Origin: Ascidiella aspersa
Taxonomy: Eukaryota
Assembly: GCA_963924565.1 (NCBI GenBank)
Contig: OZ004614.1
Coordinates: 22,630,001-22,694,000, forward strand
Length of the DNA: 64,000 nt
Direction of reading: 5' to 3'
Positions 15,264 through 59,742 of this stretch are shown in pieces (the first letter of the stretch is position 1; the number at the start of each line of letters is the position of its first letter). The position numbers and the translations under genes are program-made. Under the pieces are notes generated by a model. The model worked only from the letters and a program-made list of their open reading frames with translations, did not search any database and was not told the DNA's origin.

Positions 15264-18200
15264 ACGCTGCAATATGCAAGGGAAGGAACTTCGTGCTTTC
15301 AAGCAGCAAAGCTAACCAAACAACCTCCAAGTCAGCTTGCACTGGTGGTAACTTGACAAGTATTCCTGACGAAGCAACACAAAACCACATCAGCACTCTC
15401 GCAAGCAACAAGGTTGGCAACGGGTGGACTGGAGGTAGTGAAGTCTGTAAGTAACAAGAAGCAAAAATGTTTAAATTAACTTAAATGCAAGTGATAATTT
15501 GTAAGCATATGGAAACATAACTTTATCTTAAACGGTTTAATGTTGTTAAACTGCATATTTTTTACCAGACGCTTTCATCGGCGGGGAACGTGATGGATAC
15601 GACTTTAAGTGGCCAGATGGAACAACATTTTTAACCTCCACAGGTTTGAATAAAACTAAGTGTTACGTGCTTAAGTGAATTTTTTTAAGGAGGGAGGAAT
15701 GTTACGTGCTTAATTAGCACTACAAAATTATCACCGGTTGCTAATTACGCCGACTGTAAATTCTAACATTCATTATTAATTTTGCGCCTTTGTTCTTAAA
15801 TGTAGGGCTAGGAATTAGGTTTTCGCATTTCGAGACATGTATAATTGTATATTAACGTAATATTCTTGTGCGCTGTGGTGTTCGCCGTTAATTGGACTTT
15901 AGACATGTTTTTTCCTGTCTCCAAACATTTCTGCAAATCTCACAATCATTTATCGCTTGTTTTCCGGCGCGGTTTAACTTCTCACTAAAAGGTCCGCCCA
16001 ATGTTATCTTTCCACGAAACGGCCGCCCTGTAAGGCAGGCCTGGGGTTTCCGGGAGCGCGTCGGTTCCCGTGAAAAGGAGTTTCGTTTTAGCGTATATTA
16101 CGAGCGGCTCACCGCCTACAGCAAAGAGAGACGTCTGGGTGTAGCCTTGTGAAATTAGCGAGTAAAACTTTAAGTTTCATTATGCTCTGTCTGTCGCTTT
16201 TGTAAGTAATTGTGTGTGTCTAAGTGTCATTATTGTCTGTGGTGTGGTAATATTCTACTCTTGCAACCAATACATCTGTACATTGGGTTTTCTTGTTGTG
16301 GTCTTTAATATAAGTTCTCTTTGGTAGGTTATTTATTGCCCGAAAATTAAGGACTCACAGCGACTTTACAGGAGGCCTAGGTAATTTTCTAGAATTACTA
16401 GTAAAGTCGTAACACTAAGTATAAGGTTTGTCCGATAATTTCGGATTCGATAACCTGATGCCAAATGATAGTATCGGTACTCGTCCGATACTAAGATAGT
16501 ATCGGTGTTGATCCAATACCAAATTTATTTGTGCATAAAAGCCATGTTTTGCGATCCAACGTACAGTTCAAACGGTGATTTTTTTGTAAAATGTTACACT
16601 AAACATTAAAGATAAATAGTATCTCGAACGCGAAAACAAATTTCGGTCTAGTACCCTTAAAATCATTATCTTGCTACAATTTCACCAATTTTGTCTTTTT
16701 GACCATAAGGAATGACGTCATTTGGTATCGGAATATAATACCAAGCAACATTTTTTACTCCGTGTGCCAGTTTATGAATACTGTCAAAATATCAACAACT
16801 CGCGTGCCAAACATTTTTCTATGTTTAGTTTTGCACTGGCAACCAGGGATACAGTTTTCTGCCTTTTTAGTTTCGAAATTTTGTCGTGCGCATGCGCACG
16901 CGTCGGATTCAAGTCCCGAGACCGACTCTGCAGACCTGTGATCTGACATCTGATTTACGTTTATTTTTTGGAATATACTTCCATTTTTTTCAACCTATAC
17001 CTAGAAATGTTAGCCATAAGTTTCGTTTTTTGTTGGTTTCTCAGCCGCACAAAAATACACGTGCTTGATTTTTATGTAGAACAGTGGTTCTCAACCTTTT
17101 TAGCATACGGACCGGTAAAATTTCAAAATTTTGCAGACCGAAGGACATTGAAATATTAAAATAAACCCAAAATGTAATAACGACAAAAGTAAGACCAAAA
17201 CGAGTTGTCGCCTACTTTAAAGCAGTTGGGAAGAACACTTGCAGCATTGTGACGTAAAATAAAATCCAAAGTAGACCCTTAACTCAATGTTACGTCACAA
17301 TGCTGCAAATTACGGAACTGGCGAAGTTCGAAATTTTATGGATAAGCGGCGTCTTCTTTCATTTTGCAATTAAGATATAAACTTGTAATATATTTGACCG
17401 ACCGGCCGGAAAGTTGACGCGCACCGGCGGTTGAGAACCACTGATGTAGAATATCCTGCATTAACGCAGTGAGCGTCACACCACTTTTGGGGTATTGTGA
17501 CGTAATAAGATCGGTTAGTCGTAAACAACAAGTTTAACGCACACACAAATTGTTAAATACAACAGTTAAGACAGATATTCGTGACACGAACTGGCAATGT
17601 GTTCAATGATTTAGTTAACGCTAGTGTTAGTGATGTAATAATAATGTTAATAAAGTGGTAATGATGAGTAATGGTTGTACTTACGTAAAGTGATATAATA
17701 TGAGCGTTAAATCACTTGGCGTGCCCTAATTTTGATAAACCTTTATAATCCGATATAATTATTGTGGGGCCCGGGACAGTATTTCGGGGGCCAGGGCATA
17801 TATACTTTAAACTAAGCTAGTTAAACTCAAATTTGTAGTTTGCATTCTGGCGACATAAACCTCGGTAATGACATTCTGAGAATCGTGTTTCTAAAACGTA
17901 AGTTTACGGGGGCACACATTTTTTGGAGCCTGATAAGGGCGCCCCTTGCGTGAAAGGTTAAAAATATAATGCTTTATTGATATTTTACAACAGCGTTTCT
18001 GTGGGGTAATTATTGGTCCACATCGGGATACAACGGATGGGCTGGTTATGGGCCTTCAGGCAACGGAACATGTATGGCGTTTAGAGGAACACGGTCTGGT
18101 TCATCCGGCAATTATACTTACACTTGGAAGTGGGTGGATGCGTTGTGTTCTGCAAAATTCTACTACATCTGTGAAAAACAAGGTAACGTGAATAAAGTTG

Positions 18201-21200
18201 ATAAAATACATATTGCCGGAACTTATGTTATTTTTTTTCCTTTCGCCCGTATATGCAAACAATTTTTAACGAATTTGTAATTTGTAGATTATTTGTCCAA
18301 TTTATCCTGGAAATTTTAACCAAGGGTTTGAAAGAGTTTTATGTTCAAGTAATCGAGCTCAAATTAAAACTAAACGATATATATTTATAATGACCATACA
18401 AAATGACAATATTGGCGTTAAGAGATATCAAGAAAAAATGCAATCTGTTTTCGCTGTAGGTGGAATCCATTATCATATTATTGCAAGACTGTGTTGCAAG
18501 ACTGTGTTGATAAAGTTGTCTAGTTTACTAGAGTATAAATAAAGAAACGTTATGTATTAAGATTAGATTGTTTCAATTTTTGGCATCTTTCCATGTAGAA
18601 CAGCGTATTGCAAGAATTTAAAAAAAAAAATGAGTCATTTAGATTTAAACAGAAATTGAATTACGCCGAACTTTCATTTAGTTAGACAATGAGATAGAAC
18701 TTAAAATCATTTATAGAATACATTAAATTTCGTATAGTAGGGGTGTGCAACTGTCAGCCGGCAAAGCGACATTTTGTACTTCTCTTCAGGTTTTGGTTTT
18801 ACACATAGCCTACTCTCTACCAAGCTTGCCTTGCAAATCTACCGACAATACTAGTTCAGTTTAATATGTTTTCTCTGTATATTCCTTACCAATCCCGTGG
18901 CTTTAAAAATGGCATTCGTTTAACGCATGTGAATGACATTTTTGCAAACTATAGGACACACAAAATCCCTCACCGGAGAGTACTGAATATTGAAAACCTG
19001 GAAAATAGCCTTAATCTTAGTAAAAAATTATATAAATGCTATACTTTTCGTAAACTCAGTATGAGTCATGAAAACTGTTAGCGTACAATATGGAAACACT
19101 TGTATTCATGGAAGGTGTAACACAGGCAGGGATGTCGCATTTTATCCCGATAACGATACCCGATATTTTGGGCAAAAAAGTATCGCGACTGAGCCGATAC
19201 CTCATGACATTATATCCTTGCTCAAATAGGCAAAATAGATGAAATTAAAAATGTCTAAATGCATTTTTTCCCCGATTGGTAGGCCAAAATTTGCGTTATC
19301 GTTAAAAAGTTTGCTTATGTCCAGTTATACCGACTAAGTTTTGATATATTTACGGATTCCGCAATTTGGTGTTGGTTATTGGCCAAATCCAATAACGTTG
19401 GACATCCTTACGTTTTAGATAAATTAGAGCATAAATATGATTTTGCCAACAAAAAACAAAAAGAATAAATAAATTTTGTTTTTTATAAGACCAGGGTTCA
19501 CCATGTTTTTAAAACATCCACAAGGGATGAATAGGACAGCCAAGAAGGGATTAGGGTTGAAATTAATGATGTAATTCGGGGTGGGGTTTGGGACTGATTC
19601 TGGCCAATTAGGTCTTATTCCGATTAATTTAGGACTTCTTCCAATTTAGACGGTATTACAACTATAATTAATTAGTCCTATTTTGTTCTTATTCTGAATG
19701 TTTTATTCTAAGGTTAATGTTGTTTTTATTTAATAAAATATTAATAACGTGTAGTTTTTTGACAAAAATAAGTAAATAAATAAAAATAAAATATATTATA
19801 TTTTTTTCTTACAAACCTAGTTTCACGCAACGTAAATGTGACGTCACCGACCAGCACACCAACATTGGGAAGCAATTTGAAATTCACAGGAACCATCTCT
19901 GGCTTTTACAACGAACCTCTTAACGTGGTTGTCGCTCATGGTGGAACAAACACCAAGGTTTCAAGTAATTTCGTTGGAACGAGCTTTACTTACGTCATCA
20001 ACCCTGTCATCTCGACAGACAACGGAGATTTCGTGTTCACTGCAACAAATACTGCTGGAACTTGTTCTGGTTCCACAACAGTTCGACTTACCGTCGGTAA
20101 ATCCCGTGCTTTAAATATTTTAAATTAAGTTAGGTGCTATATAACAATGTATAAACTATATAACAAAGACAATCAATAACAATTAGTTGATAATTAAAAA
20201 AAGCGAAATAGTAACAAAGAAATATACAGGGTGTCCATAAAGTCTCTTTACAATTTAAAAAATTATTATAAAGTGAAATGATGAGATATCGCAATGAGGT
20301 TTGTTTTATGTTAATCAGTATTTCATAAAGTTTTTATTGACACATTAAATACACTTCTAAACATTTAATCAACATTTAATTAAAAACATCATTACTTTAT
20401 TTAATACACTTCTATATGGGCACCATTAGTTGCACGAAGCACATCTAAACGGTTAATTTAGAAATTTTGTCTGAAACAATAAATTTTAGTGCCAATAAAA
20501 ACTTTATGAAATACTGATTAAGATAAAACAAACCTCATAACCCTACTTCAAAAGAGCATAACAACAGGTTAGAGATAATATGGTTAACAATTAGGATTAG
20601 GTTGTTAAATTGGTTCGTCTGTGTTAAGCGTACAAATATTTTTGTTGGCATGGCAATTAAGTGCAACTTTTTAAACGGCGCCCATTGTTTCTTTTTTACT
20701 AGTTTTAATTTCGCGCACTACGTGGGTAGAAATATACACAAAGCTAATTGGTGCTACCCACACAAAAAGAACCTACAATACTTCCGTGTTATATAACCTG
20801 CTGGATACACTAATGTTTTTTTGTGATTTATAAAGTTTATATATGATTAAAACTGTCTGTCATCTTAAAGCTAACAATACAACCCACTATCTAATTTAAA
20901 CTTACCCGATGTGGCCTAACTAGAAATCATAATGCTGTCTTATTAACAGCTTTCATAAGAAAAACGTTGCTGAAACCTTTTTTAGGAATAAACGTTAGGT
21001 TTTTAAACAAAAATGGTTGCATTTACTTCTTATTTTTGCGGCTCCTCCGCCTCCAAATAATGTGAGGTTAACACCTTCACAAACACAAATCACAATTAGA
21101 TGGACAAATGCTCCTGGGTTTGTTACTTCGTACTTTGTGTATTGGAAACCAGTCGAAGGTTACTCTGGCTCATCAACTACAGTTAGTTCACCCACAGCAA

Positions 21201-24200
21201 GTTACACAATTAGTGGGTTGACTTCTATGAAAAGATACGAAGTACAAATTAAGAGTAGAAGTGGTTTAGTTCAAAGCACAACGGTTACACAAACGACTTC
21301 AACAGGTTTACAAATTGCTTAACAAATTAAATAACATATCGTAGTATATTGCATAATGTTGTCTAAACATTTTTCAATACATCGTTTGTATTTTGTAATT
21401 AGCTATTGGAAACCAACAATTATTACTGCAACCATAAAACAAAGCTAACTTTTCACTTGATATCGATTTCAGGTTCAGTTCTTGTCAGTTTTTCCAGCTT
21501 TTCACCACTAACAGTAACTCTTAAAGCGGCTGCATCTGTAACTTGCACTTGTTCGGGATATTACGAGCCACAATGCAGATGGTTCAGGTATTTGGAATTT
21601 GTCAAACTTTATTAATTGCTGCGTGTTTATCATACTGCCGATAGCCTAAAGATACGTTCTTATATAAGTGTCGGTAAAGAACTAATAACAGGAAGCCTTC
21701 TTACGGAACTGCAACTACACCATGCTCAACACCATGCAAGGTTTAACAACACACAAAAATAAGATACAAATGCAATATTTTTTTTACATATTCGGAGCAA
21801 TGTATAGTATTGATCGGAATAAGCTCTTATTGGCAAACTGGCTGTTGCAAGACACATTTTTATCTTCCAGCGCATTTCGTTTTTACTTTAACAGGAGCAA
21901 CGTCGAACAAACCACAGGTACTTCGACACAAGTTTATCAAACCTCCACCATAGCAGGTGGAAGTACGTCAGGAACATCTACACTTCACATCAACATTACA
22001 GATCCAAGTTACGCGGGTCATTACGTGTGTAAGGCCACCAACTGGGATGGAAGTGGAATAAAAACTAAAAATTTAACCATACATGGTAAGTAGTGGAAAA
22101 TTATATTCTTTTGTTTCTTCCTGCTTACACATACTTTAAAACGTCGTTTGTTTTTCTGACACAGTTAGGCCAACTATTGCAACCAGTAAGTCAGCTATAG
22201 ATTTTACTTCATACAACACTCCACAACAAGTTTACTGCGAATCGCGAGGTCACCCCAAGCCTACAGTTGATTGGACGAGGTAAGCATACGACTTACGGCC
22301 CACGGCAACTATTTGCGTTGTCCACATATCCTGAGCAGTCAATTGTAATTTGCCTACTGCCATGGAATTTTGCATCCTAGCTAACAGCTTTTGTGATAAA
22401 ATGTCCCACGCTTTGTGACTTAAAGCTAACAGCTGCGTAATATGTAATAGTGCTGAACGGATTTATTTTTATCTTGTGGTACTGGCATTAGTCGTAGTTC
22501 ATTTATACTTTGCACATTTAGTATGTGCTTTGAAGGTTGCTCGTTAAATTAATGTGGCTCTCGTCGTTTTTGGCCAACCATGTTGAATAACGTGGTGTGA
22601 GCAGTGCCATCTAAATTATCTTAACAGGAAGTTATTAAGTGAAACTTTAATTGGTTTAGATCTGGCTTTTCGGTTGCAACAAGCAGTGGTCTAAAAGTTC
22701 GTCAATTTCAAGCGAGCTCAACTGCTTTCTACGTAAAACAAACCCTCAACATCAGTCTTCAGAATGTTCTCGAATGTGGGGAGTATGTTTGCAAAGTTAC
22801 AAGCTCAGATGGAAGCGAAGAAACTAAGTCTGTATCAGTAACAGGTAAACTTAAACTAGATACACACGTTCGTCATTTGTAAAACTTTTTTGCATCGTGT
22901 TCGTTTATCCTAAATCAGAACACAAAATTTCCTTGTTTAAAAAAAATAGTTTCGCAAAACATGAAGTTAGTAGCGTTTATAACGGAATACAATAACAAGT
23001 ATCACATATCCCTAGTTCAACAGGAATAATATTAATCTAAACATTTTGCTGCTTTTGTTTCCCGAAACAACAAAAAGTATTTGGCTTATTGAATGACTAC
23101 AGCAAGTCTGGCGCAATTTCCTTTACGTATTATTTTAACTCACAGTAGCAACCCACGTTCCTTTAGTGCAGTGCTTTTCAACCTTTAAAATTTCCATCCG
23201 CACTTTTTTAATTCGAAAATTTCCATCCGCACCAAACAAGCACAGTAAGTTTGCAACGTTTGCTTTTATTTGTGAAATAACAATAAAGAATTTGTGTATT
23301 AAAACCATGAGCTAAGCATTGACCGATATAAAATAGATAGCTTAAGCTGCAATGAACCACTATACGAGACTATATTATTGTACCTTTAACGCATAAGTGG
23401 GCGAACGAGCTTATTCGATTACTGTATTACACATAATAAAATATAATAATGCATCATTTTCATCCGCACAATCATCCTTACGTTAGTCATCCTCATTACA
23501 ATTTTTTTATCCGTACAAGTGCGTGCCATCCCACGGTTGAAAAGCACTGCGTTAGTGAATAATATTAGTGAAAATAGTTTTTTAAAGCTTAGTGTTTAAA
23601 TTAAGGTTGCGCAGTCGAAGTCGGACTCGGAACTCGAGTAAGACCACTTAAAACTACCCGAGTTGCCAGTCCACGTGCGCATGCGCAGTTCCAAATTTTG
23701 AAGCTGATATGGCAGCAAACTGTAATTTGTAAAGACGTATTAGTTTATGGTGGATAACCGTGTAGAATTATATGACAATAAGTGGATTAATAATTATCCA
23801 CTGCATTTAGTTACGGCAATTGGCGGAATATAGGCTGTACAATCAGAGCCGGACTCCGGACTCGACGAAATCGCACATTTGGCCGGTGTCGGACTCTGGT
23901 TGATTTTTAACCGACTCCGTAGCCCTGGTTTAAATCGCTATAGTGACTTTTGTGGTGTTACGTGCCATCACTTCGCAACTTTATGAATGAAATTGACAAG
24001 CCAAATAAAAAGAAAAAGTTTTGCCTAATTATGAACACCAGATCATTTTACGTGGCTACTATATGCATGTTGATAAACATTATAATATATTCGCTATAGG
24101 GTGATAAATAGATTGCAAAAATTGTCACATTTGAAATTTTGACAATTTATTTCCAGTATTTCAAACTCACAAAACTTTTTTACATTGTTTCTATTAAACG

Positions 24201-27200
24201 ATTGTTATAGTTCAGCCGAACGTAACATTATCCACCAATGAGCTGACTGCAAATTATGGAGAATCGAGAATTGTTACTTGTACCAGCTACGGTTATCCAA
24301 TGCCAAACATCACGTGGAAAAAGTAAGTAGGCCTAATGTTTGTGAAATGCTTACGTTTTAGAAGCAGTGTACAGCAACACTGTATAAACATACTTACGTT
24401 TGTCAGACAATGATGTAACTTATTTTTCTTTTTAAGGAAACTCAAATGACAAATAGACTTATTATTAGAAGGTTCAACTATTTCACAGATTTCTTTAAAT
24501 AAGCATAAATCTCTTTGTTCCGACGGTCGTCGAGTAAAGACGTTATACAGTCGCACATGCGTGTGGCCCATTGTTTATTATTATCAACTTTGGCTGCTCC
24601 GTAAATAACGTTTAAATATTTAAAAGAAGTGTAGGCTCTGTACAGCGGACCTGCAGGCTAAGTCACACAAAGGGGGTTGTTACGTTGAAACGCGCATCTT
24701 AACCAGTGTTGTAAACAAGTCCTTTTGAACTGACTTGAGTCCCAGTCAAGTCATTTGTAAAGTACCTTCAGTCCAAGACAAGTCATGACATGACTTAAGT
24801 CATTACAACACTTCCTTGCCCTAACCTACAATGACGACAGTCTCCAAATCCTGGTGTAATGACGCCAAATTCACACAATACACACAAGTAGCAGCGAAGC
24901 ACGTAACACGCCAACGAAGTACTTTCATGTGACTAACAGGACAAAGCACGGTTTCTAAACAATAAAGTTTCAAATAACATTCAGCTTTTCACATTCTTAT
25001 TTCTAAGTTTTTTAAGTTTCGCTAAACACAAAGTCCAACAATTAGTTACTTAGCAAAGTACAGCACAGCTCACTATTCAAACTTATTGCTACCGTACATG
25101 CATTTATGAAAGAAGTATTGCGCTTTAGGATCTCAAAAAATCTCGGTGTAAAAATATTGAAGCTTTGGTAATTGTTGAAAATAAGACAAAATGAAGACTT
25201 TAGTCAAAACGAAGGACATTTCTTAAAAATGAGGACAATAATTTTTCTAGCACATAAGCTTTCGAAATAAGGACAAATCTTAGAAATACGGACAGTATTG
25301 CAACCCTGGTTATAGACAAAGTTTAAGAAACTTTGTTTTTTAAATACTTACTTTTAGGGTAAACTTTCTGCTCTCAACCGACGCTTATCAGACCATTTCC
25401 ACCGACAGCACAAATTATCGGAAAACTGCAAATCTACATCTAACAAATATTGACGTTGGTTTGTCGGGGCGTTATTATTGCGAAGCAAATAACTCAGAAA
25501 CAGTTCACAACAAAACATTTATTCTCGAAGGTAACTGGCGTTTTGACTCAAGGTAACTTTTTTGCTCCGGTAATCATTGTGACAAACCTTTATATTTTTA
25601 GTTCGAGCAAATATATCTCTTTCACCTTCATTGAAATGGAAAGTAACACATTTTCCCGAGTCATTCTACGTCGATTGTGTGTCTTTTGGATGGCGCCAGC
25701 CCAACGTTTCTTGGACAAGGTACGGTCTATATAAAGTTTACCCAATTGGTGCATTTGGTTTGTTTTATTGTTCAATGCTGATCTTAGCACAAATAAAATT
25801 AAAAAAATATATATTTTCTAACAAAGACATGTTTATATTTTATTTTATCAAAACAATTTTTTTCACGCAAAACCTGAGCATTGTGCATGGACGTTTTAAA
25901 ATACTATTTGAGTATGTCAAATGTATCAGCCTAAAATAAGGTTTTAATAGCTGGTTTATTTTTAAACTGAACGCGCATTTATTTCATTCAGAAATGACCA
26001 GCCAGTAACCGCATCTACGTGGGTTGAAGTGCACCAAGTTACTACAGCAGTTTCCACATTCCAAGTGAACTCGCGTCTTCACTTCACAGCCACAAGCATT
26101 GAACAAGTTGGAGCTTACAAGTGCACAGCAAGCAACAACATTCCTCCATCCGTTGTGAACACAACGTTCTATTTGCATGGTAAGGTCGCTTTCTTCACAC
26201 TTTGGAGAGCCATGTGCAGGGATGTTTGATAATTGATGTTTCAAAAAATTATCGCCCCACGATCAGATAACAAGTTAAAAAACTGCTTTAGCGTTGAGAC
26301 GTTTAGCTACAACCAGCTGTTAACCAACTATTTATTTTATATAAATTTATCGGACAAGATTGAATCGCTGAGTTGGATCGCATATCATAGCGAGAATTCC
26401 TCTTTTGATTTGATATCGTATCGGTACCGATACTCCGTTTGAATATTATCGGACATCACGAGCCATTGTTGGAGAGATGCTTATAAAGATTTTTTTTATA
26501 ATTTAACGTTTTTGTTGCGAATTGGTTTCAGCCAAGGCAAACATCTCCTTGTCAACGAAAACAGTTTCGCTTAAAGACGGCATCAGGACGCAAGTTAATT
26601 GCACATCATTCGGATTTCCGCAACCACAAGTTTACTGGACAAAGTAAGACTTTATATGAATGAACGGGAATTTACCAGTTTACTTTATTGAGCAACTTCG
26701 TTTTGAACAGAGGTTCCATGAACGTGTCAAGCAATGCTGGCGATGATTTATTTCAAACAGTTCACAAAGAGGCAATTTACAAGACTGTCGCGTCTATTGA
26801 GTTTGTAAAGGCTTCGCCCACTACAACAGGAAGTTTCGTATGCCACGCCAGCAACACAGTCGGTGAAAATAACTTAACTTCACTGCAAGAAACTTTAACG
26901 GTTACTGGTAGGTATTTATTTTTTATGTTTTTGTAGACTGATTACACAACTTGTACTTGATACGTTCACAGATACTTAGCGGTGTTATCTAGTTTCAACG
27001 TTTAACACGTTCGACTTTATATTGCGCATTTAAAGTAAGGGCGAATCCAGGAATTAATTTTGCGGGCCATCAAAATTTTATTTGTGACGTCTTTAGTTCG
27101 TCATACCGTGACGTCATAAAACAACTAGCCTAATCTTAAAAACACCGCTGTTCTAGAGCGAATCTGTGCGCAAATATGGTAGCCAATTTCAAGCTAATCG

Positions 27201-31154: not shown

Positions 31155-32254
31155 TAGTTTACAATTTTAAGATGTGCATCATACATGCTTCAAAACTTCG
31201 CTTTTGCGACATTAAGTCACTTACTTTTTATCCATTTTCTGCTTATTTTATCCATTTTCTGTTTATGTTACCAGAAATGTGAGAAATTGTGCAATTCCAT
31301 CCATAAAAACAAATATACCAGCCAACAAACTCAACTGTATATTTTAGCCTTTCACTTTTTTCGCCAAACCCAAACCCCCAGCACTGCAATCTTACTGACC
31401 ATACGAGAACAGCTACTAATTAGTCAACGTATCTCAATTTTATGCATTTTTTTTTCTTTGATTATTATATCGCTCCTTCCGATTAGCGATTTAATAAAAT
31501 GACTTATTACCAAAATTAAAGTTAAAAGTGTTATACGGAAATCCCTGTTAGTAGTATAAACGTCATCTTTAATTGACCAACACGCCCACTGAGTGAATAA
31601 TTACCTCCCAATGGTGATCAGCTGCTTCGGATCTGACGCATCTGTCCTTTGGGCTAAATTCCAAAAAAAAAACATTTATATACTATATGAAAAACAAACA
31701 TTTAGCGTCTCTTTCTTTGCTCTAGTTTACAATTTAAGGTGTGCATTATACATGATGCCATACTTAGCTTTTGTGACATTGTGTCACTAACTTTTTATCC
31801 ATGTTCTGTTTATTTTACCAGCAATGTAAGAAATTGTGCAACAAAAAAAAAATATATATATACCAGCCAACAAACTCAACTGTATATTTTAACCTTTCAC
31901 GTTTTTCGCCAAACCCAAACCCCCAGCATTGCAATCTTACTGACTATACGAGAACAGTTACTAATTAGTCAACGTGTCCCAATTTTATGCAGTTTTTTTT
32001 TTTATTATTAGCCTATATCGTCTCGATTTACTGAAATGATTTATTACCAAAATTAAACGTAAATGTAGCATTATGGAAATCCCTGGTGTTAGTATAAACG
32101 TCATCTTTGATTGACCAACAACTGAGTGAATAATTGCTCCCCAATAGTGGTTAGCTGCTTCGGATGCAATTAATCTGATCATTTGGGCTAAAATGAAAAA
32201 AACATTGATGTACTATAAGAAAAGCAAACATTTACCGTCTCTTTCTTTGCACTA
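31155..32254. repeat. ~550 bp tandem duplication downstream of copy A
   Basis: About 31155-31722 aligns with about 31723-32254 (e.g. ATATACCAGCCAACAAACTCAACTGTATATTTTA; CGCCAAACCCAAACCCCCAGCA). A diverged single copy follows copy B (~49050-49500). Confidence 0.85.
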
Positions 32255-32549
32255 ACGTTCAAACAATACTTTTGTTTTTAGTCAAACGTGCATCTTTTAA
32301 CAGGATTTAATAGAATGGGTATTATACTACAGTTGCAAGGATATCTGCGCTTGAAAAAAATCTATAACTTTTTGTTTTTTTTATCTATAATTTTTTTTTG
32401 TATCTCCAATCTCATTGTGACTAACACTTTGGAAGTGGAATCGTCATGTATTATTTCTTGCTTTGAAATATTTGATTTTAATTTGACCTGAACACGAACC
32501 GAACCATTATTGTTTCCTGTATGGTCGACTTGGCTTAAAATAAATTGAT

Positions 32550-48590: not shown

Positions 48591-51038
48591 AGTTATTCAA
48601 CTTAATAGACCTTTGAAAACAAATCAAATCAAACAACCGTGGTGTTATGTACAATCTCCCGACTACGAAACATGAATGCAACGCTAAGTTCTTAAACTGT
48701 TTTAATGCAATAACGTAGCCCACGAAAAAATTACAGTCATTGCGATTACATCTATTTTGTAATGTTTTAATCATACAAATTTTCTACATATATTATTTCT
48801 GCTTAATTAAATAATTTTGTTTTATTTCTATAAATTTATTTAATAAACACTCCCAGATTCATTGCGGTAGTGTGGTGTTCACCGCCTTAATTCCATTAGC
48901 TTTTGCTTAACGACTGACGTAATAAAACACCTATGTGCCTCACAATCATTATTCCTAACCCCTTTATTTCGTCATATTGTCTCCGCTATCTCCAGCCATT
49001 CCCTTCCATGCTAGCATTTATATACATGTATTTGTTTTCAGTGTGCTAAGTTTTAGTTTTTGCTGTTTGTCGATTTTGTCAGAAATATGACTAATTGTGC
49101 AACTCCAAACACAAATGAACAGATGTACAAGCACTTTAGAAAGATAAACTATATTTTTTAACATTTGGCCTCCCCAAAGTCAAACCTTCAGTCTAACAAT
49201 CTTTTGAATATGACTGCAAGGACATAGTTCTATATGTTCAAGTGACTTCCATTTTATTTATTTGTTTTTTGATCGTGTTACTGAAATGAATTATTAATAT
49301 ATTTGAAGGTGTATGTGTTATATTCAACCCATGTTTAATGGACCCATATGCCTACTGGGTATGTTATTGCTTTACAATGATGACCAGCTGCTTTCAGGTC
49401 TACAACACTTAAATTTTTAAGCTGAATTAACAAAAAACAACTTATACTCATGTGGTTGGTCGTACGTAAGAGTATAGCGTCTGCTTCTTAGCTTAATTGT
49501 TTGAACAACACTTGCTGTTTTGTTATACGCGTAATTTCTTGACAGGATTCAAAACACCGACAATTGGATATTCTATGGTGGGTGTTAGCATAGTTGCGTT
49601 ACAAAATTTAAATCACTTAAAATAAATTAGTGATCTGATTAACCCTATATGTGCTTTTTATTTGATTATATCAATCTCATCGTGTCTAACACTGTAAAAA
49701 GTCCTGAAAAACCGTGTTTCTTTGTTTTAAATATTTTCTAACGTCAACTGAAACGATTTGCGTCTCCTGTTTGAAAATTGTTTTTCTTTTAAGCCGTATA
49801 ATTTACTTGCTCTTCATGCGTTACAGCACGTTTGGCGATCAATAAGCAACATTAACAATGAATTTGTTTGTTATAACGGCCAAATACAATAGAAGCAAAA
49901 TGTAATAATAATTGTGAAACCGTTGTACTGCTTTATGCCTAAGCCTAATTTGGCTTCGTTTAACCAACGCAATGAGGCTGTCCCGATAAAAATGCTGTTC
50001 TAATATAGAATGTTTGTTTGTCTTTTAGGTGGGATGTAAGTCGTAATGCATGTATGACGCCTGCAAAGTCTATTTGTGGCCTTAACATTACTGTTTCTGA
50101 CTTTCCTTTAAACGTTTTTCCCATGTTTGTGAATGCTTTTTCATATTTTTTGAATCCTTTTTTACAAGTTGTGTAACTATAACCTTGATATGAAAGTATA
50201 CCCTTGGCATTAATATGTATTTTCTACTGGTAGCATGATAGAAGATTTCTTTTTGAAAACCAAAACGCCATCGCATGTTAGGGCGAAGTGATAAAAAACA
50301 CTTAGTGTATGGCTGTATGGTCGAGCGCCAAGAGACGACCAATCAAGTGCTTGTTTAGTTTCAATCATTAAACGTCCAATCTGTCACACGTGTGGGACAA
50401 AAAATGTTTATCGTTAGAAAACACTTTTTAGTGTAAAATTTAATCAAAAGATGTACCGGTAGCAGTTGTCTTTAACCGCTGTTTTTGGTAGATAGTGTAT
50501 ACTGACTCTAATTACCTCCTATATAATGGGTGTTGAAAAAAGGTTAGGTTTGATGTATATAAAACTGCTGTAATTAATTGGTTTGGCGAACTTAGTCTTT
50601 CTACTCAAAAACGTGTCGCTGAAGACAAAAGTTATGGATGAAAAATACGGCTGTCAACCAAGACTAATTTAAGTCTTTGTATTGCATGTTAAATTAGCGT
50701 TGTTTTCAAATTGAAAAATGAAGAAATATCTGTGAGTGGTATTTGCCAGCTTGTTTAAGTATTTACGATTGTATGAGTGACACAAAGCTGCTGTATGTCG
50801 TAAACATGTTGTCAACGCAATAGTTTGTTGTTTTTCTTTCTTCCCGTCATAACGGCCTTTATTTGAACTGTGTGAGATTTGAAACGGCTCGTTTTTTAAT
50901 CTACGTATTTCCTACTGATATGCTTGGCTCACATCTTAACAATTGATCATTGGTTTATTAGTGTGATGTGGATGAACTAGGATAGCTAGCTCAATAGTTT
51001 AATTCTTGACAATAAAATATTTGCCTGTATTTCATCCG

Positions 51039-54000
51039 ATGTTAATCTTATTTTTGTTATTGTTAACGTCCTTGTGGATTGACAAAACAGGTTTGTACTT
51101 TGTGTTGTTCTTACCAAATTGTCTTTTAAAAAAATTCTTCGAAATTGTTTTTATAATTTTTTTATCATATCCACACTTTCTTATTTTGCCAAGTCCAATA
51201 CCGTTTGTAAACAGGTAGGCTGTTTTACTTGGCATTCATTTTTACCTTTAAAAAAATACGTTGTATGGTGGGCACCACCCATGCCTAATCCGGTTCAAAG
51301 TATACCAAACACTATTATTATGGTCGATTTTATTTGGTTGTGTAAGTAACAATACCCTCAGAGATTAAAAAGCAAAACCTTGTGAATAAATGCAACATTT
51401 TTTTAGCGTAAAATGTTGTATCAGCAATTATTTGGTTCCATTTTCTTAAGTTAATAACATTTCGTCAGATCTTGGCCATTTAGCTTCGCATTCGATCGAT
51501 GTAGTCCACATTTATTGTGTTTAGTTGGCGAAAGTGATAGGAAAGTTATTTAAAAGTATTGTTTGGTTTGTTTTAGACGCTGCAACATGCCAGGGAAGGA
51601 ACTTTGTGCTTTCAAGCAGCAAGTCAGAACAACCAACCGCCAAGTCAGCTTGCATTGCTGGAGGTGGACGCTTGGCAAGTATTCCTGACGAAGCAACACA
51701 AAACCAACTCAGCAGTTTAGCAGGCAACAAGGTTGGAAACGGGTGGACTGGAGGTAGTGATGTCTGTAAGTAAAAGCAAACGTTACTGTTCCTTAAATGT
51801 TTTAATGAGGTCTAAATTACATTATTTCAAAATTACATACTTTTTTATTTCTTTGTTATTTTAAGATGCTTTTATTGGCGGGGAACGTGAAGGAAACGAA
51901 TTTAAGTGGCCAGACGGAACAATATTTTCAACCTTATCAGGTTTGAGTTCAAGTTAAATATTAGGGATGTCCGATAAAGATAGGACCCGATACCCGTTGC
52001 CAATTGATAGTATCGCTACTCGTCCGATACTACGATGGTATCGGTGCCGATCCGATACCAAACTTATTTGTGCATTACAGCCATGATTTAACTTAAACTT
52101 TTAAGATGAATAGCTTACTTCGAAAAACATTTCGGTCTAATATCCTCATAAACATTTATCGTTGCTGCAATATCATCAATTTCATGACGTCATTTGGTAT
52201 GGGATCGTTGTATTTTTCGCACAAAATATCGACCATCGGTATCGGACTAAAACACCAATTATCGGACATCCCGAGTAAATGTAACAGAAAATGGTGCTTG
52301 TTATGTTGTTCCTTCTAGAACATGGGTTCTAACCTTTTTTGTATGTTTTACTCTTTTTTTTACCCCAATATATAAAATTGTGCTCATTTATTAAAAAAAC
52401 GTAAGTAACAAATTGCATCAGTTATTTTTCGACGGCTGCCCAAGCTTTTTAGCAGAGCAACGGAGCCGGAGTCGGAATCAGGACTCGGGAGTCGAGTAAG
52501 ACATTGCAAAACTACCCGAGTCATGAGTCTGACATGCGCATGCGCAGTATCAAATTTTAAAAGTGATATGGCCGCCAAATGGAATAGTAAAGGTGAAATA
52601 GCATATGTTTGAATATTTTTTAACCATGTATTATGAGTGTATAAATTATACGACGCCCCTATTATAAGTGGATTTTTGAATACCCACGTTATTTTAGTTA
52701 CATAAATTGGTGAAATACAGGCTGTAGAGTCCGGGCCGGACTCAGGACTTGACGAAATCGCACATTTGACCGAAGTCGGACTCGGGTTATTTTTAACCGA
52801 CTCCGCAGCCCTGCTTTCTAGCAATGAGTTGTTCAATATCTAATAAAGTAGTAGATAATAACTGGGCCGAACACAGTGACAAAAAGTAGGAAATCACATG
52901 CAGCACCTTACAGTTTTTGCTACTAATTTTTAAAGCACCTAAAATCCGCTATGACTGACCTTTCTAGTCCTAAATTGAACAATTAAACCTAAAACACACT
53001 GTCTTCTCGCAGACGGGTTACCTAAATCTATGCCGAGGCTGCCGAAAAAGCTGATGAATTTAAGCAGCAAAGCACGAACAATTACGATACTAAGAGATAA
53101 CGATGTTGGCAATAAACTAAATAAAGTATCAATTAGCGAAGCATAACTTTACGGAGGCTAGACGATGAATCAATAGCTACTAGGATAGCTGTGAATAATC
53201 AATTAATATAAATTAGCAAAGTAGGCTGCCAATACAATTTTTATGTCCTGTCAACTGATTTGAATATTTTGATTGATAGTTTATTTACCCCTTAAACCAA
53301 GGAAATTTACCCCGTGGGGTAAATTACCCCAGGTTAAGAAAGGCTGTACTAGAATAACACAACAAATGAAAACCGTGCCAATGAATGTTATACCAAAACT
53401 GTGAATCTGGGGTAATATATTCCTAACGCATCATCTATCGAAACATTCTTGGCCATGAGCAAAAAAATCAAATTATCAGTCAAGTTAGTTAAACTCAATT
53501 TTGTGGTTTCCATTTTAACGACAAAACATCCGTAATGACATTCAGCGACATATTTTGCGAAAACGTAAACAGTGGGCATAAATTGTTGAGAGCCCAAAGA
53601 AAGGGCGAACTACTCAAGAAAGGATAACAAAAATACTGCTTTGTTGGTCTTTTAAAATAAAAGGTGGTAGCTGGTCAACACCGGGATACAATGGGTGGAC
53701 AAGTGGAAGTGGACATACAGGCAGTGGATCATGTATGGTGTTTACTGGAACACGATCCGGCTCACCAGGAAGTTATACTTACACTTGGAAGTGGGGAGAT
53801 GCGGCGTGTACTGGAACATTCTACTACATTTGTGAAAACCACGGTAACTCAAATAAAGTTAATAAATGGCGAAACAATACACCTTGCCGGAACTGATGTT
53901 AATTTTTACTTTTGTCCGTATGCAAATAATTTGTAACCAATTTGTAGTTTGTAAATTATTCATCCAATTCACCTTTACAAATTTTAGCAAAGTGTGTTGT

Positions 54001-57000
54001 ATGTTTAAATAATCGAACTCAAATTGAAACTTAGCGATAAATATTAATTGCCAATTGACAATCATTAGCCAAATGACAAGCAAAATTTGACGTTAAAGAG
54101 ATATATTACAGTTATTCCAGTGGTTTTAACGCTTTTTTGCCGCGGACCACTTACACTCGATTTTCACCATCACTGATCAACACCTAGTATCGAAAGAAAC
54201 CATTGGCTCAAATTTACTGAAGTTTATTTAGGTAAAACAAAAATTAAAAAAATCAAGCTTCAAGCGATAGTGGCAGATTTTAGATTATAAGTGGATTTTT
54301 TTGAGAGACTATAACGTAGGAGTTACGGCAGCCGTAATAATGCTATAATTGCGTTAATTTCCCTAAACCCGAGATATGATGAGATATGAAAAGCTTTTCG
54401 CGTACAATCTCGAAACCCCATAGCGCTAGTTGGACTATTATCGGGACGTGCACCGCACATAGGGATTCCCGATATATTATATACCGATACCGATACCCCC
54501 CAAAAAAATTATCGCGATCCGATCCGATATATAATGACGTCGTAACGAAGCTGAAATTGGCAAGATATATAAAATTAAAACGTCCAAGGATTTTTTTTCT
54601 AGATTTTTAGGCCAAAATTTGACTTAGAGTTAGGAAGTTGACATATATCGAGTTCTTAACCGACTAAATTTCGATGGATTTAACGATTGTACAAGTTGAT
54701 ACAGAGTATTGGCCAGATGCGGTATTGCCCGACATCCTTACGTTTCATAATTAAAATGAATTACAGCATAAATGTGATTTTATCGAACAAATACAAAACC
54801 ACGAATAAATTTCGTCCTTTTATAAGACGAGGGTTCACCAAACTTTTTTTAGGACAGGACAGTTAAAAGGGGTGGCGGTAGCGTGTCGGGTAAACTTTAA
54901 AGATTAGAATGGCGGGCCGGATGTAAAATTTATAGTATCACCCTCGTTTGATCTAATTATTATAAAGCAAAAGAACCATCAAAATATATTTAAAAAATGT
55001 ATAGTGAGCCCAATAATGTCGTTTAGTTTAAAATTCTATCAAATTTTGCTTAAAAACAACATTTCCGTTAATAAAGAAAAAAAAACTATTTTAGGATCAT
55101 CACAGAAATATGCAGCGGGCGGGAGAATTTAACCGGCGGGTGGTGGCTTGTTGACTCATGCATTAGACTATAATATATTTTGTTCTTACAAACGCAGTGG
55201 ACCGCAACTTGGCTGTGACGTCATCAACCAGCACACCAGCATTGGGAAGCAGTTTGACATTCGCAGGAACCATCTCTGGCTTTTACAACGAACCTCTTAA
55301 CGTGGTTGTTGCGCATGGTGGAACAAACACCAACGTTGAAAGTAATTTCGTTGGAACGAGCTTTACTTACGTCATCAACTTCGTCACCTCGTCACACAAC
55401 GGAGATTTCGTGTTCACTGCAAGCAATAGTGCTGGGACTTGTTCTGGTTCAAAAACAGTCCAACTTACAGTCGGTAAATCGCGTTCTTTGATTAGTTTAA
55501 TTTAAGTTTTTCGCTGTTAAACAGTAAAAAGACAATAAATATTCAATAATAATTGAAAAAAGTGAAACAATGAGAAAGAATAATATTGCTATCGCGCCGT
55601 CGACGCCGTCAACAACTATAATGTAAGTTCTCAGGTCACAATTAGCTAGAGCGCTGTTGCTGGGAAAGTAGTGACAGGATACAGAGTGACTTGGAATCCA
55701 ACTGGTGGTTCACCAACACAACCTTTAGAAGTTGCTTTTCCACTGTTACAACCATCACCGTCGGTTGTTTTATCCAGTGGTTCTCAAACTTTTTTGTGTG
55801 TGTCACCTATATGGAAAAGTTTTATTGAACTTACCACACGCCAATCTATATGAACTTTGCTAACTTTTAGTGGTTGTACAAATCAATTATAATCAATTAC
55901 GGATTTTTCTGTAACAAGGGTTCGGAATTGTCATGTTAAAACGGTAATAGGTAATCGAGTTCATATCACGAAATCATTGTGCGAAGCCCTTGGAAAATTA
56001 AAGACGCACAGTGTGAGTTTGATCTATACGAATTCTGCTGTAAATGTGTTTTTTTATTGAATTTTCTTGCCAAAATTATCGCGGCTTTAATCTGTAAGCA
56101 CATATCAAATCGAATGCAGCATTGATGTAGAATAACATTGTTTCAAACTTATAACCTCGTACCGCAGGGCTGCGGAATCCGACTTCGATCTAAAAAAATA
56201 AACAAAAAGAGTCCCGGGTCGGACTCAGTTTTGATAATGTTTACATACAACGCTGATTGTTGCAATGCAAAACCGTTGTACTGCCAGACCGGCCTAATGA
56301 CACACCACGTGCTACTTGAAAGCAATTCTAATTTGCACGTTACTTTTAGTCCCGCCACCAACCAGTTCGGTCACTTTAACCCAATTAACCAGCGGTGGAA
56401 AGTCACAAATCACAGTTCAATGGACGGCTGTTGGTGGAGCTACATCTGGATATTCGGTGACGTGGACTCCAAATGGTGGATCCGCCCAGTCTAGAAATGT
56501 TGCAACTGGCACAACTACAACCACCATCAGTGATTTAACACCTGGACAAACATACAATGTTGATGTCAGGGCTAAGTTGGGAACAGGAATTAGTGACCCT
56601 ACTTCAAAGAGAATAACAACAGGTGTTAACATATCGATATTATGATGGTCAACAAATCAGGTTTTTTCGATATATTTTATTTTCAGGCAGATTATCTAAA
56701 AAAATATTTTTTTGGATTACACTGATTTTGTTTTTACCTTGTCTGGTTACTGTTGAGCATACAAATATTTTTGACTTGGCGAGGTAGATGAATTTAATCT
56801 CTAGGATGACGGCCATTGTTTATATTTTCCTAGTTTTAATTTTGCGCGATACGTGGGTAAAAAATTACACAAAGCTTATTGGTGCTACCCCCACATATAT
56901 AGCCTACGATACTTCCGTGATGTACTGCCTGCTTGGAAAACTAATGTTTTTTCATGATTTTAAGGGTTATTTCATGAAAACTCTGCGTCATCTTAAAGCT

Positions 57001-59742
57001 AGCAATATAGCTCACTACTAATTTAAACTTACCCGATGTTACTAGAAATCATAATACTGTCTTATTAACAGCTTTTAAAAGACAAACGTTTCTGAAATAT
57101 TTTTTTAGGAAAAGACGTTAGGGTTGTTAAAATTTGCAAAATACAATTGCCTTTTGTTTCTGCAGCTCCTTCACCTCCGAGCAATGTGAAGTTAACACCT
57201 TCACAAACACAAATCACAATAAGCTGGACAAATATTCCTGGGGAAATTGTGACTTCGTACTTTCTGTACTGGAGATCAATCGATGATGTCTTTTCCTCAT
57301 CTGCAGTTAGTGCGCACACAACAAGTTACACAATTACCGGTGCGACTTTTATGAAACGATACGAAGTACGCATAAGAAGTTTAAGTGGTACAGAAGGAAG
57401 CACAACTGTTACAAAAACGACTTCTTCAGGTTAGTATACGCGAAGTCAAATGGAATTACATTTAGAAAGCACCGTACATTGCATGAAGCTGTCTTATCAA
57501 TACATTTTAGCTTTTGCTAGCCAACAGAAAAATATAGTAATTCCGAATAAAAGCAGTTACATTTTTACTTTACCTGGATTTCAGGATCAGTTCTTGTCCG
57601 TTTTTCCAGCATTTCACCTCTAATAGTAAGTTTTGAAGCGGCCACATCTGCAACTTGCACTTGTTCGGGATATTACGAGCCACAGTGCAGACGGTCCAGG
57701 TATTTGAAACTCTATAGTTTCTGCGGGGTTGTTAAACGGTGACGGCCTAAAGATATACTAAAAAAACTCTTACAGTACTTATTTACTTTATCCGAAGGTT
57801 CGCCTACCTATACTTTTCAGGACATAAAAATGCGCTAACTAACGTACAAGGTCATAAAATATATGTTCTTTTAGAAAAAAAATAAAATAATTGAAACAAA
57901 AACGATAAAATAATGCAACGCAAATTTATAGCTATTAAAAATGTTAAATTATACTGCCATTAGTTGAAACCAACAACGCTTTGTATATGGTTTGCCTACA
58001 CATTTGAAGCAATATATCACATGGATCTAACTACAATGTTAATATCAAGTTGACTGTCGCAGTTTAAAGCAACATTTTCTTTGATCACAACAGGAGCAAC
58101 GTCGAACAAACCACAGTTACTTCGGCACAAGTTTACCAAACCTCCACCACAGCAAGTGGAAGTACGTCAGGAACATCTGCACTTCACATCAACATTGCAG
58201 ATCCAAGTTACGCGGGTCATTACGAGTGTAAGGCGACCAACTGGGATGGAAGTGGAACAAAAACCAAAACTTTAACCATATATGGTAGGTAGTGTAAAAC
58301 TAATAATTTTGTTTCTTCGCGCTTACACGTCATTTGAAACGTCGCTTGTTTTTCTGAAACAGTTAGGCCAACCATGGCAACAAGTAAGTCAGCTATAGAT
58401 TTTTCTTCATACAACACTCTACAACAAGTTTACTGCGAATCGCGAGGTCACCCCAAGCCTACAGTTGAATGGACGAGGTAAGCAAACAACCTACGACCCA
58501 CGGCAACTATTTACGGTTTCCACACAGCCTGGACAGTCAATTTAATCTTGTTGTTTCTAACAGGAACATAGAGATTTTGTATATATGCTTACAACACATT
58601 ATTCTTACTTATTTGCTATCATTGGCCACACTATCATAAAACTTAGCATTCCAGCTTACATTTTAGCTCTTTGTGATAATACATTCTATGATTGATTGCT
58701 TGGTGATCTTGAAATGAGAGTCTAAGAGCTGGGTACAGTGAAAACTCATATAGAAAGCTTGTAGTACTGGCATTCTTCGTAGGTCATTTATACTTTTAAT
58801 GTTTAATATGTACTTTGAAGGGTATAGTTACCACACATTCGACGCATTTTGTAATTGGTTGCGCTGCTTATAAATTACAGTTATAAGCATTATAACTAAT
58901 TTGCTGCTTATTAAATTAATGTGGCTCACGTCGTACTTATATTTTCGATTTTGGATAACAACTGAACAATCGTCTCAACAGGAAGTTATTAATAGTGTCG
59001 TTTGCTGGGTTTTAGGTCTGGCATTTCGGTTGCAACTAGCACTGGTCTAAACATTCGTCAATATGAAGCGAACTCCACTGCTTTCTACGTAAAACAAACC
59101 CTCGACATCAGTCTTCAGAATGTTCTCGAATGTGGGGAGTATGTTTGTAAAGTTGCGAGCTCAGATGGAAGCGAACAAACTAGGTCTATTGCTGTAACAG
59201 GTAATTTTAAACTCTATAGGTTTAAGGCATGACACGTAATTCGGCAAAGTCTGGATTTACTTTAGAGTCAGGCGGCATTTGAAGTAACAGTAGCAGCCTG
59301 TCATTCTATGGCTCTGATGACTTCCTTATTTGTTCACGGTATGACGTTTAACTCGCACTAGCACGTTTTGTTGTTCGGTACCTCTAAAGTTTAGACTATA
59401 GAGGTTTGGAGTCTAAACGGTGTTAGTTTTTAGCTATTTCTTTGCGTGTTGGCGTGGATTGTGGTTTTGTGATATCGTGCTGCATCACTTTGTGGCATCA
59501 TGAATTTTTTTATTATTGGTTGATTTTTTGCTATTCATTTTGACTATTTATTTTAATTGTTCCAAATTCCTCCCAATTACAACAATTTAAATAAGAGCTT
59601 TTTCCCATTGTTTTTCTTAAATGACTATAGTTTAACCGAACCTCACGTTATCCACCAATGAGTTGAATGCAAATCATGGAGAATCAAGAATTGTTACTTG
59701 TACCAGCTACGGTTATCCAATGCCAAATATCGCCTGGAAAAA
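51039..59742 (+). CDS. Copy C: truncated paralog (leader-CTLD-Ig-FN3-FN3-Ig-Ig-stop, ~639 aa); secreted form or pseudogene
   Basis: Leader 51039-51090; CTLD 51577-51765, 51866-51940, 53664-53843; Ig1 55198-55473; FN3 56350-56622, 57166-57429; Ig2 57585-57699+58094-58284; Ig3 58363-58477+59016-59200; Ig4a 59631-59742 with in-frame TAA at 59633-59635 (CAG in copy A). The Ig2 core Trp is Arg. No downstream family exons were found. Confidence 0.75.
51962..52273. mobile_element. MITE of the TAGGGATGTCCGATA family
   Basis: Termini TAGGGATGTCCGATAA / TTATCGGACATCCCGA with internal CCGATAC motifs; relatives at ~2851, ~16424, ~19128, ~34310 and ~54440. Confidence 0.75.
52453..52813. mobile_element. 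MITE of the CAGGGCTGCGGAGTCGG family
   Basis: Termini CAGAGCAACGGAGCCGG / CCGACTCCGCAGCCCTG; TSD CTTTTTAG / CTTTCTAG. Confidence 0.85.
55590..55774 (+). pseudogene. Decayed FN3 pseudo-exon within copy C
   Basis: SQVTIS*SAVAGKVVTGYRVTWNPTGGSPTQPLEVA has TAG at 55647-55649 at the FN3 Trp position, then a frameshift and a MITE end (CAGTGGTTCTCAAACT) at 55775. It is paralogous to the FN3 exon at 56350-56622. Confidence 0.8.

Follow-up and report, generated by a model that had tools for sequence, protein, structure and literature searches.

Lectin-like/immunoglobulin receptor genes arranged in tandem in Ascidiella aspersa: a candidate paired recognition system with tyrosine-tail and phosphatase classes

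The receptor genes of the window

The stretch of DNA analysed here, referred to as the window, comprises 64,000 nucleotides (C8:22630001-22694000) of the genome of the ascidian Ascidiella aspersa (308.6 Mb, 75 contigs). It is intron-rich, has a G+C content of 33-40% and contains no N. Comparison of its open frames and of its DNA with themselves revealed three colinear paralogues on the + strand, A (15.2-30.9 kb), B (35.0-48.6 kb) and C (51.0-59.7 kb), whose products combine C-type lectin-like domains (CTLD), immunoglobulin (Ig) domains and fibronectin type III (FN3) domains. The initial annotation of this DNA had described three same-strand paralogues, and the all-against-all comparison within the window agreed with it. 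The genes belong to a family of about 45 loci in which, as described below, one ectodomain appears to be coupled either to a tyrosine-bearing tail or to a protein tyrosine phosphatase (PTP) domain, and which is a candidate paired recognition system.

Exon chains were rebuilt from splice sites and phases, read directly on the DNA. Copy B (34958-48590, + strand) consists of 24 exons, every one bounded by AG and GT, and encodes without internal stop a type I protein of 1320 amino acids; the part from the first CTLD (CTLD1) to the stop codon makes up 23 exons and 3936 nucleotides open in frame. The protein has the order signal peptide, CTLD, seven Ig-like domains, a short CTLD-like domain, an FN3-like region, stalk, transmembrane segment (TM) and tail. 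It carries 22 N-glycosylation sequons, its TM lies at residues 1180-1202, and the tail is 118 amino acids long. Type I membrane proteins of about 1300-1400 amino acids had been foreseen, and the 1320 residues of B and 1306 of A fall within that range; the TM and the seven-tyrosine tail ending in SVYEKVK were also read in copy B as described. The features of copy B are as follows.

34958-35009, + strand: exon 1 with start codon and signal peptide (52 nucleotides, phase-1 donor; hydrophobic, Met-initiated)
35523-35699, 35779-35856 and 36348-36521, + strand: CTLD1, three exons with GT-AG introns, joined in frame
37039-37314, + strand: Ig1, single exon without canonical Cys pair, typed by AlphaFold2 and Foldseek
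37528-44620, + strand: Ig2-Ig6, two exons each, with phase-2 introns within and phase-1 introns between the domains
45017-45313, + strand: Ig7, single exon (Pfam Ig_3 over positions 1-78 of 78, 19.9 bits), 85% identical to copy A
45869-46036 and 46097-46195, + strand: CTLD-like domain (CTLD2) of about 86 amino acids with four Cys, weak profile matches
46559-46779, 46868-47035 and 47112-47298, + strand: FN3-like region, three exons (Pfam fn3 20.6 bits, below the cut-off)
47441-47624, + strand: Ser/Thr/Pro-rich stalk and TM, with a juxtamembrane exon at 47697-47767, both read from the sequence
48310-48590, + strand: tail exon with seven Tyr and the stop codon; motifs YxN (twice), DYVMP (YxxP), YEQ and C-terminal SVYEKV

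The signal exon of copy B is 92% identical to 51039-51090 of copy C and occurs also at the paralogue at C8 25.22 Mb. Its phase-1 junction leads to a conserved acceptor, tag/ACGCTGCA, whose position is 35523 in copy B, 15264 in copy A and 51577 in copy C. The FN3-like region of copy B is kept at 75-89% in A and at 28-50% in paralogues on C3 and C7. The other copies in the window were delimited in the same way.

15264-30875, + strand: copy A, 23 exons, 1306 amino acids, open from CTLD1 to the stop codon; DYVMP module duplicated in the tail
21042-21305, + strand: FN3 exon of copy A, with GG in place of the AG acceptor that copy C has at 57164-57165
51039-59200, + strand: copy C, truncated after Ig3; signal exon, CTLD1, Ig1, two FN3 exons, Ig2 and Ig3
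59636-59742, + strand: Ig4a relic of copy C without usable in-phase acceptor; donor at 59742
2619-3000, + strand: relic of a further copy, consisting of the CTLD1b exon (2760-2816) and flanking intron pieces

The limits assigned earlier to the locus, 15264 and 59742, turned out to be the CTLD1 acceptor of copy A and the donor of the Ig4a relic of copy C. The relic announced at 2.6 kb was also recovered, the segment 2619-3000 matching A and C at 75-82% in blastn and at 68% over 19 amino acids in tblastn. A signal exon for copy A was found neither between 8 and 15.3 kb of the window nor at the duplicated locus C8 19.962-19.966 Mb. Leaving out the FN3 exon 21042-21305 preserves the reading frame of copy A. 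The two FN3 exons of copy C (56350-56622 and 57166-57429) exceed the gathering score of the Pfam fn3 profile, with 53.5 bits over 56352-56621 and 39.8 bits over 57168-57428; copy A possesses a single FN3 exon, with GG at the acceptor position. The possibility that A, B and C are haplotype artefacts of the assembly was rejected, since their exon content differs and synonymous divergence (dS) is saturated in the middle block.

Typing of the ectodomain and of the tail

Database, family, structure and fold searches were all run with single exons, and joined translations served solely for frame checks and feature counts. Because CTLD2 and the FN3-like region (with the exon termed X) are split over several exons and were queried exon by exon, they are only weakly typed. 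CTLD1 is likewise split over three exons, so that Pfam detects the last one alone, with a partial Lectin_C match of 18.3 bits (cut-off 22.6). In an alignment of nine family members, CTLD1 displayed four conserved Cys, a WIGL-like core and a C-terminus of the form WxD-x-x-C / F-x-C-E, a signature by which it is assigned to the CTLD superfamily. The calcium- and sugar-binding positions were read from this alignment and from an alignment with CLEC4A. In every member aligned, G-P-S and W-G-D (W-Q-D in the C3 and C7 paralogues) stand at the positions of EPN/QPD and WND. Of the designation "lectin", therefore, the fold signature remains, and the EPN/QPD and WND ligands are lacking.

The Ig1 exon gave no Pfam match and has no Cys pair. 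Its AlphaFold2 model, computed from a family alignment of 12 rows, was a seven-strand sandwich with a pLDDT of 93.8, and the Foldseek neighbours of the model were Ig V-type domains (E about 1e-4). The Ig2-Ig6 exons yielded sub-threshold Pfam matches to I-set, Ig_3 or ig (16-20 bits), and C...W...Y-x-C patterns were present in Ig2-Ig7. As judged from the predicted fold and these patterns, the ectodomain contains domains of the immunoglobulin superfamily.

A profile of the first CTLD2 exon was compared with the Protein Data Bank (PDB). The matches included intimin D3, collectin-11, PLA2R and the TSG-6 link module with E-values of 0.08-0.9, and five of the eight best had the CTLD fold; hhalign related CTLD2 to CTLD1 with a probability of 26%. 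PDB sequence searches with the single exons CTLD1c, CTLD2a and Ig7 gave nothing significant. Plausibly, CTLD2 is a compact CTLD. The second CTLD of the initial annotation thus exists as a four-Cys domain of about 86 residues, but its assignment to the CTLD fold is weak.

The cytoplasmic sites were compared across 22 family tails. YVNT and DYVxP occur in all 22, YEQ in 21 and YEN in 13. The C-terminal SVYEKV of A and B fits the pattern of an immunoreceptor tyrosine-based inhibitory motif (ITIM), (S/I/V/L)-x-Y-x-x-(I/V/L), which is kept in 12 of the 22, while nine tails of the 24.0-24.5 Mb array end in SVYERAY, with Ala at +3. By the general specificities of Src homology 2 (SH2) domains, YxN would be bound by Grb2-type, YxxP by Crk/PLC-gamma-type and ITIM by SHP-type proteins. 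Reading DYVMP as a YxxM site for PI3K was rejected, the Met being at +2, which leaves YxxP.

The C-terminal Y-E-K-V also fits the sorting signal YxxPhi, and the N-terminal domain is a CTLD. The proteins might accordingly be regarded as endocytic or scavenger-type lectin receptors, in which the lectin-like domains capture particles or glycoproteins and the C-terminal motif serves sorting and is no ITIM. We consider this most improbable: CTLD1 is devoid of the calcium and sugar ligands, the +3 residue is Ala in the nine tails mentioned, and paralogues bearing a PTP domain (see below) point to signalling, not to cargo uptake.

The family in the genome, its phosphatase class and its evolution

At least 28 copies of the tail exon were detected, all on C8. 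The Ig1 exon is present there in at least 41 copies, with six distant copies on C3 and C7. On C8, the Ig1 copies form arrays at 8.26-8.47, 9.94-10.2, 19.97-20.0, 22.63-22.85, 23.99-24.56 and 25.19-25.30 Mb. The family comprises about 45 loci concentrated on one chromosome. Nine loci outside the window were compared. From CTLD1 to the membrane-proximal exon, the complete series is found again twice on C3 and once on C7 at 28-59% identity. These divergent paralogues (C3 6.22, C3 6.63 and C7 21.85 Mb) have a TM exon of their own and a tail that keeps Q-Y-V-N-T. Between the C3 6.22 Mb and C7 copies, a similarity of about 80% extends into the introns, which indicates a recent inter-chromosomal duplication. 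Short members of the composition CTLD1-Ig1-TM-tail are located at C8 24.54 and 25.23 Mb. In the member at C8:19966000-19998000, the exon block from Ig2 to CTLD2 is duplicated internally, so that two series precede the FN3-like, TM and tail exons; the locus represents a single gene with 13 Ig domains or a fused pair.

A second kind of cytoplasmic end was found in the member at C8 8.28 Mb, where exons downstream of the TM exon match Pfam Y_phosphatase (52.9 and 27.8 bits). The best PDB matches of the PTP exon were the receptor PTPs (RPTPs) epsilon, alpha, sigma, LAR and CD45 (E 5e-22 to 1e-15). A genome-wide scan with PF00102 located PTP exons downstream of 13 Ig1 loci, at distances of 10-25 kb and all on C8: seven in the region 8.26-8.48 Mb, two in 9.92-10.01 Mb and four (24.2-24.5 Mb) in the 24-Mb array among tail-type genes. 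At C8 24.197-24.227 Mb, for example, Ig1, Ig2-7, CTLD2a-like, FN3-like and then PTP exons are colinear on one strand. Copies A, B and C contain no PTP catalytic domain. In a tree of 43 Ig1 exons, whose resolution is limited by its 273 columns, the two classes were interleaved: the PTP label needs four changes, and the PTP genes of the 24-Mb array group among their tail-type neighbours. On the evidence of exon order, one ectodomain is coupled to two signalling ends, a Tyr tail or, in at least 13 paralogues, a PTP domain.

The same scan returned more than 150 PTP-domain exon matches, with large tandem arrays on C6 (29.0-32.6 and 7.22-7.32 Mb) and further matches at C2:25.18-25.35 Mb. The C6 arrays indicate a very large expansion of tyrosine phosphatase genes beyond the lectin-Ig family.

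Divergence between family members was estimated exon by exon by the method of Nei and Gojobori as the ratio of nonsynonymous to synonymous divergence (dN/dS). Between B and A, dS was 0.15-0.54 in CTLD1/Ig1, 0.9-1.8 or saturated in Ig2-Ig6, and 0.08-0.30 from Ig7 to the tail, except in FN3a (0.59). The comparison of B with the 24.16-Mb member gave 0.14-0.32 in CTLD1/Ig1 (CTLD1a not aligned), 0.19-0.74 in Ig2-Ig6, 0.43 at Ig7 and then 0.76-2.0 (CTLD2a, FN3a/b, X and tail). In amino acid sequence, too, Ig2-Ig6 of B have more in common with the members at C8 24.16 and 8.28 Mb (70-89%) than with the neighbour A (37-66%). By these values copy B is a mosaic of two lineages. Its Ig2-Ig6 exons therefore represent an old lineage brought in by block exchange and did not diversify rapidly.

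The Ig2-Ig7, CTLD2 and FN3-like exons had dN/dS ratios of 0.15-0.5, indicating purifying selection, and Ig2-Ig6 of copy B ranged from 0.13 to 0.68. Positive selection on Ig2-Ig6 was therefore rejected. The only parts near 1 were CTLD1a, with four comparisons at 0.8-1.2, Ig1, with 0.7-0.97 between close and about 0.3 between distant members, and the stalk/TM; since the codons number only 55-90, such values are indications and not tests. The description of the receptors as diversifying holds at most for this CTLD1a/Ig1 tip, whereas the divergence of Ig2-Ig6 is old and constrained. The contigs of a second individual differed by about 1%, and the exon differences are confounded by cross-mapping of paralogues. 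Variant letters in DNA runs were not read as polymorphism because they were piled on exons with many-fold depth, which also reflects paralogue cross-mapping.

Copies that are truncated, short, internally duplicated or reduced to relics are in accord with a birth-and-death mode of evolution involving unequal crossing-over, and together with the mosaic copy and the number of loci they bear out the earlier view of a clustered, recombining family. They could also mean that the window contains mostly non-functional, recent segmental duplicates in a decaying array and that only distant members work. Copy C is truncated, A has a dead FN3 exon and no identified signal exon, and a further copy is reduced to the relic at 2.6 kb; RNA reads were almost absent, and several exons have a dN/dS of 0.6-1.0 when A is compared with C. 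However, A and B keep 23-24 exons with about 1300 codons open and all splice sites canonical, the signal exon of B is conserved, and against other members most exons show the low ratios given above (0.15-0.5). A decaying array is thus quite improbable.

A more serious alternative is a lineage-specific expansion of adhesion-type receptors (contactin/LAR-like) that act in morphogenesis, neural wiring, tunic or epithelial adhesion, or gamete interaction, and not in immunity. Ig and FN3 domains in the ectodomain and, in some paralogues, a PTP domain are the composition classically seen in receptor PTPs of the adhesion type. Moreover, most ectodomain exons are under purifying selection, and the best-kept tail motifs, YxN and YxxP, are generic adaptor sites that are not specific to immunity. 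About 45 tandem copies, truncation, short forms, block exchange and a fast distal CTLD/Ig1 end are more typical of recognition families, and the Ig7 exon had no close relative among 1.84 billion representative proteins. On balance we regard the adhesion explanation as unlikely, though one to be reckoned with.

Candidate role, related systems and neighbouring elements

The sharing of the ectodomain with PTP genes is the most informative new fact, and it suggests that the family is a paired system in which one arm has its own phosphatase built in. We interpret the genes as a tunicate-specific family of about 45 type I receptors with two interleaved cytoplasmic classes, a candidate paired recognition system, and put the probability of this interpretation at roughly 0.6. 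For ligand binding, phosphorylation, recruitment of SH2 proteins and biological role we infer the following scheme. The N-terminal CTLD/Ig end would recognise a ligand, either protein or glycan, that is carried by another surface. The conserved tyrosines of tail-type members would become substrates of Src-type kinases, and the phosphorylated tail would dock SH2 proteins, Grb2-type at YxN and Crk/PLC-gamma-type at YxxP, while a SHP-type phosphatase might dock at the C-terminal S-x-Y-x-x-V. PTP-type members would respond to ligands of the same class with a phosphatase activity of their own, so that the two types would jointly form a paired recognition system, for which innate immunity or the recognition of self and non-self is the leading candidate role. 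The most specific version is possible but doubtful: a germline-encoded paired system that places an exchangeable lectin-like/Ig module on a docking tail or an intrinsic PTP, has opposing arms reading one class of ligand, serves innate immunity or self/non-self (allo- or gamete) recognition, and evolved independently of KIR/LILR/Siglec and Fester/FcoR.

Several results weigh against a paired recognition system. By its residues, CTLD1 is lectin-like and not a canonical calcium-dependent sugar-binding domain. The joining of ectodomain and PTP exons in one mRNA is deduced from their colinearity. No charged residue of the kind that marks a classical activating partner was seen in the TM segments of B and of the 8.28 Mb, C3 and C7 members. 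The tail had been called ITIM-bearing, and the pattern does stand at the C-terminus of A and B; however, this six-residue pattern arises in 23% of shuffles of the copy B cytoplasmic sequence, and YVNT, DYVxP and YEQ are better conserved. The ITIM match by itself is weak evidence; conservation of the Tyr and of its N-terminal flank is stronger. The Ig7 exon found no true relative in the set of 1.84 billion representatives, which is without models from this species or close relatives; the two matches obtained were both unrelated repetitive proteins. No orthologue or named relative was found, and thus no link leads from the family to a tested function. Finally, one RNA run (about 6% of it) gave 12 reads on 42701-48700 with 95-99% identity, 11 of them fitting partly. 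These reads on the 3' half of copy B contained no joints, five of the 12 fell on a high-copy repeat near 45.78 kb, and they are uninformative on expression or splicing.

Invertebrate contactin, a single-copy neural adhesion protein, consists of a CTLD, six Ig and four FN3 domains and a glycosylphosphatidylinositol (GPI) anchor. Membership in the contactins was rejected because the ascidian proteins have a TM and a 118-residue tail instead of the GPI anchor and exist in about 45 copies. PcLec3 of crayfish is a secreted Ig-CTLD lectin of 252 amino acids (PMC4944128). Contactin and PcLec3 resemble the ascidian family in placing a C-type lectin-like domain together with Ig and FN3 domains in one extracellular chain, but differ in copy number, in having no second CTLD-like domain and in lacking the TM with a long tail or PTP.

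With the KIR, LILR, Siglec and SIRP receptors of vertebrates (PMC3533184) the family shares tandem clusters of type I Ig receptors, near-identical ectodomains on different signalling ends, truncated and short members, recombination between members and a tyrosine of ITIM pattern. This is a likeness without demonstrated sequence homology. In the ascidian family the ectodomain additionally bears a CTLD at its tip and, close to the membrane, a CTLD-like domain, and the tail is a seven-Tyr multi-docking structure as against one to four ITIMs. The alternative ascidian end is an intrinsic PTP, whereas the vertebrate partner has a charged TM recruiting an adaptor with an immunoreceptor tyrosine-based activation motif (ITAM). 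Classical paired receptors, whose activating partner has a short tail and a charged TM, were set aside as a class for the family: the TM segments of B and of the 8.28 Mb, C3 and C7 members are uncharged, and the alternative partner bears a PTP.

The R2A/R2B and R3 groups of receptor PTPs are approached by those paralogues, at least 13, in which Ig and FN3-like domains are followed by a classical receptor PTP domain; sites of YxN phosphorylation are a further feature shared with R3 RPTPs (PMC5336234, PMC10815196). In contrast, no reviewed vertebrate RPTP subgroup has a C-type lectin-like ectodomain (PMC5336234, PMC10815196), and A and B are without PTP. Fester/FcoR of Botryllus, also a tunicate, and Alr of Hydractinia are large, clustered invertebrate Ig superfamily families of fast turnover, with ITIM or Tyr-motif tails, changes of copy number and swapping of exons or motifs (PMC12582321, PMC9546547). 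Their domains differ from the ascidian CTLD-Ig make-up, Fester/FcoR being Ig-like plus Sushi and Alr consisting of unusual V-like domains (PMC12582321, PMC9546547). Genetic and functional evidence ties Fester/FcoR and Alr to allorecognition, whereas the present family is known from its genes alone. We consider them the nearest systems, as probable functional analogues and not homologues. The literature yielded no ascidian CTLD-Ig-FN3 receptor with ITIM and no ascidian RPTP with a lectin ectodomain, and among named receptor families no match to the domain order, in keeping with what the initial annotation had stated.

The origin of the DNA from an invertebrate chordate, claimed at the outset, was checked on C5. 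A Glyco_trans_2_3 exon (C5:19610502, 62.9 bits) and a Glyco_hydro_6 exon (C5:19613851, 28.1 bits, above the cut-off) are separated by 3 kb on the + strand within C5:19610502-19614090. Fusion of these two domains (GT2-GH6) is the cellulose synthase of tunicates and a hallmark of the group; the gene therefore supports a tunicate and, with it, the claim. Tunicates are the sister group of vertebrates and are not known to have genes for the major histocompatibility complex, T-cell receptors or antibodies, and their discrimination of self, non-self and microbes is known at few loci, chiefly fuhc of Botryllus. If functional, the family would be a new, independent example of paired receptors, with the phosphatase built in where vertebrate ITIM receptors recruit one. 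It would also offer a tractable case of exon-block exchange generating receptor diversity.

The remaining elements of the window surround the three genes. A spacer element follows copy A and recurs after B and at 63 kb (blastn 69-85%), which bears out the spacer of the initial annotation.

32540-33076, + strand: 3' spacer element after copy A, with homologues at 49882-50081 (after B) and 62981-63562

Just 3' of the stop codon of copy A, a segment of about 570 bp is duplicated in tandem (31155-31724 and 31723-32254, 80% identity). Directly downstream of copy C lies an exon with a match to seven-transmembrane receptors of the secretin/adhesion type (60187-60717, + strand, and also 61180-61410; Pfam 7tm_2, 63.8 bits). 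An element of 87 nucleotides is present with 96.5% identity in an intron of B (42475-42561, + strand), after C (59802-59888, + strand) and, in the opposite orientation, upstream of A (12128-12210). The intron of B before CTLD2 contains a very high-copy repeat (45701-45900), where the summed contig depth is about 12,000-13,000 as compared with about 70-100 nearby. Another intron stretch of B harbours tRNA-like elements (40731-40804, - strand, and 40044-40113), which are probably a tRNA-derived short interspersed element (SINE; Rfam tRNA 29.1 bits, at the threshold). In an Rfam scan of the window at gathering thresholds, only the tRNA-like element and no ribozyme family was detected.

An intronless open reading frame of 395 codons (6880-8064, + strand) encodes several hydrophobic segments, as in G protein-coupled receptors, and has about 27 paralogues in the genome; it gave no Pfam match. 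A copy with 83% identity at C8:19961307-19962491 is located just upstream of the family member at 19.97 Mb, which indicates that the reading frame and the receptor gene were duplicated as one segment.

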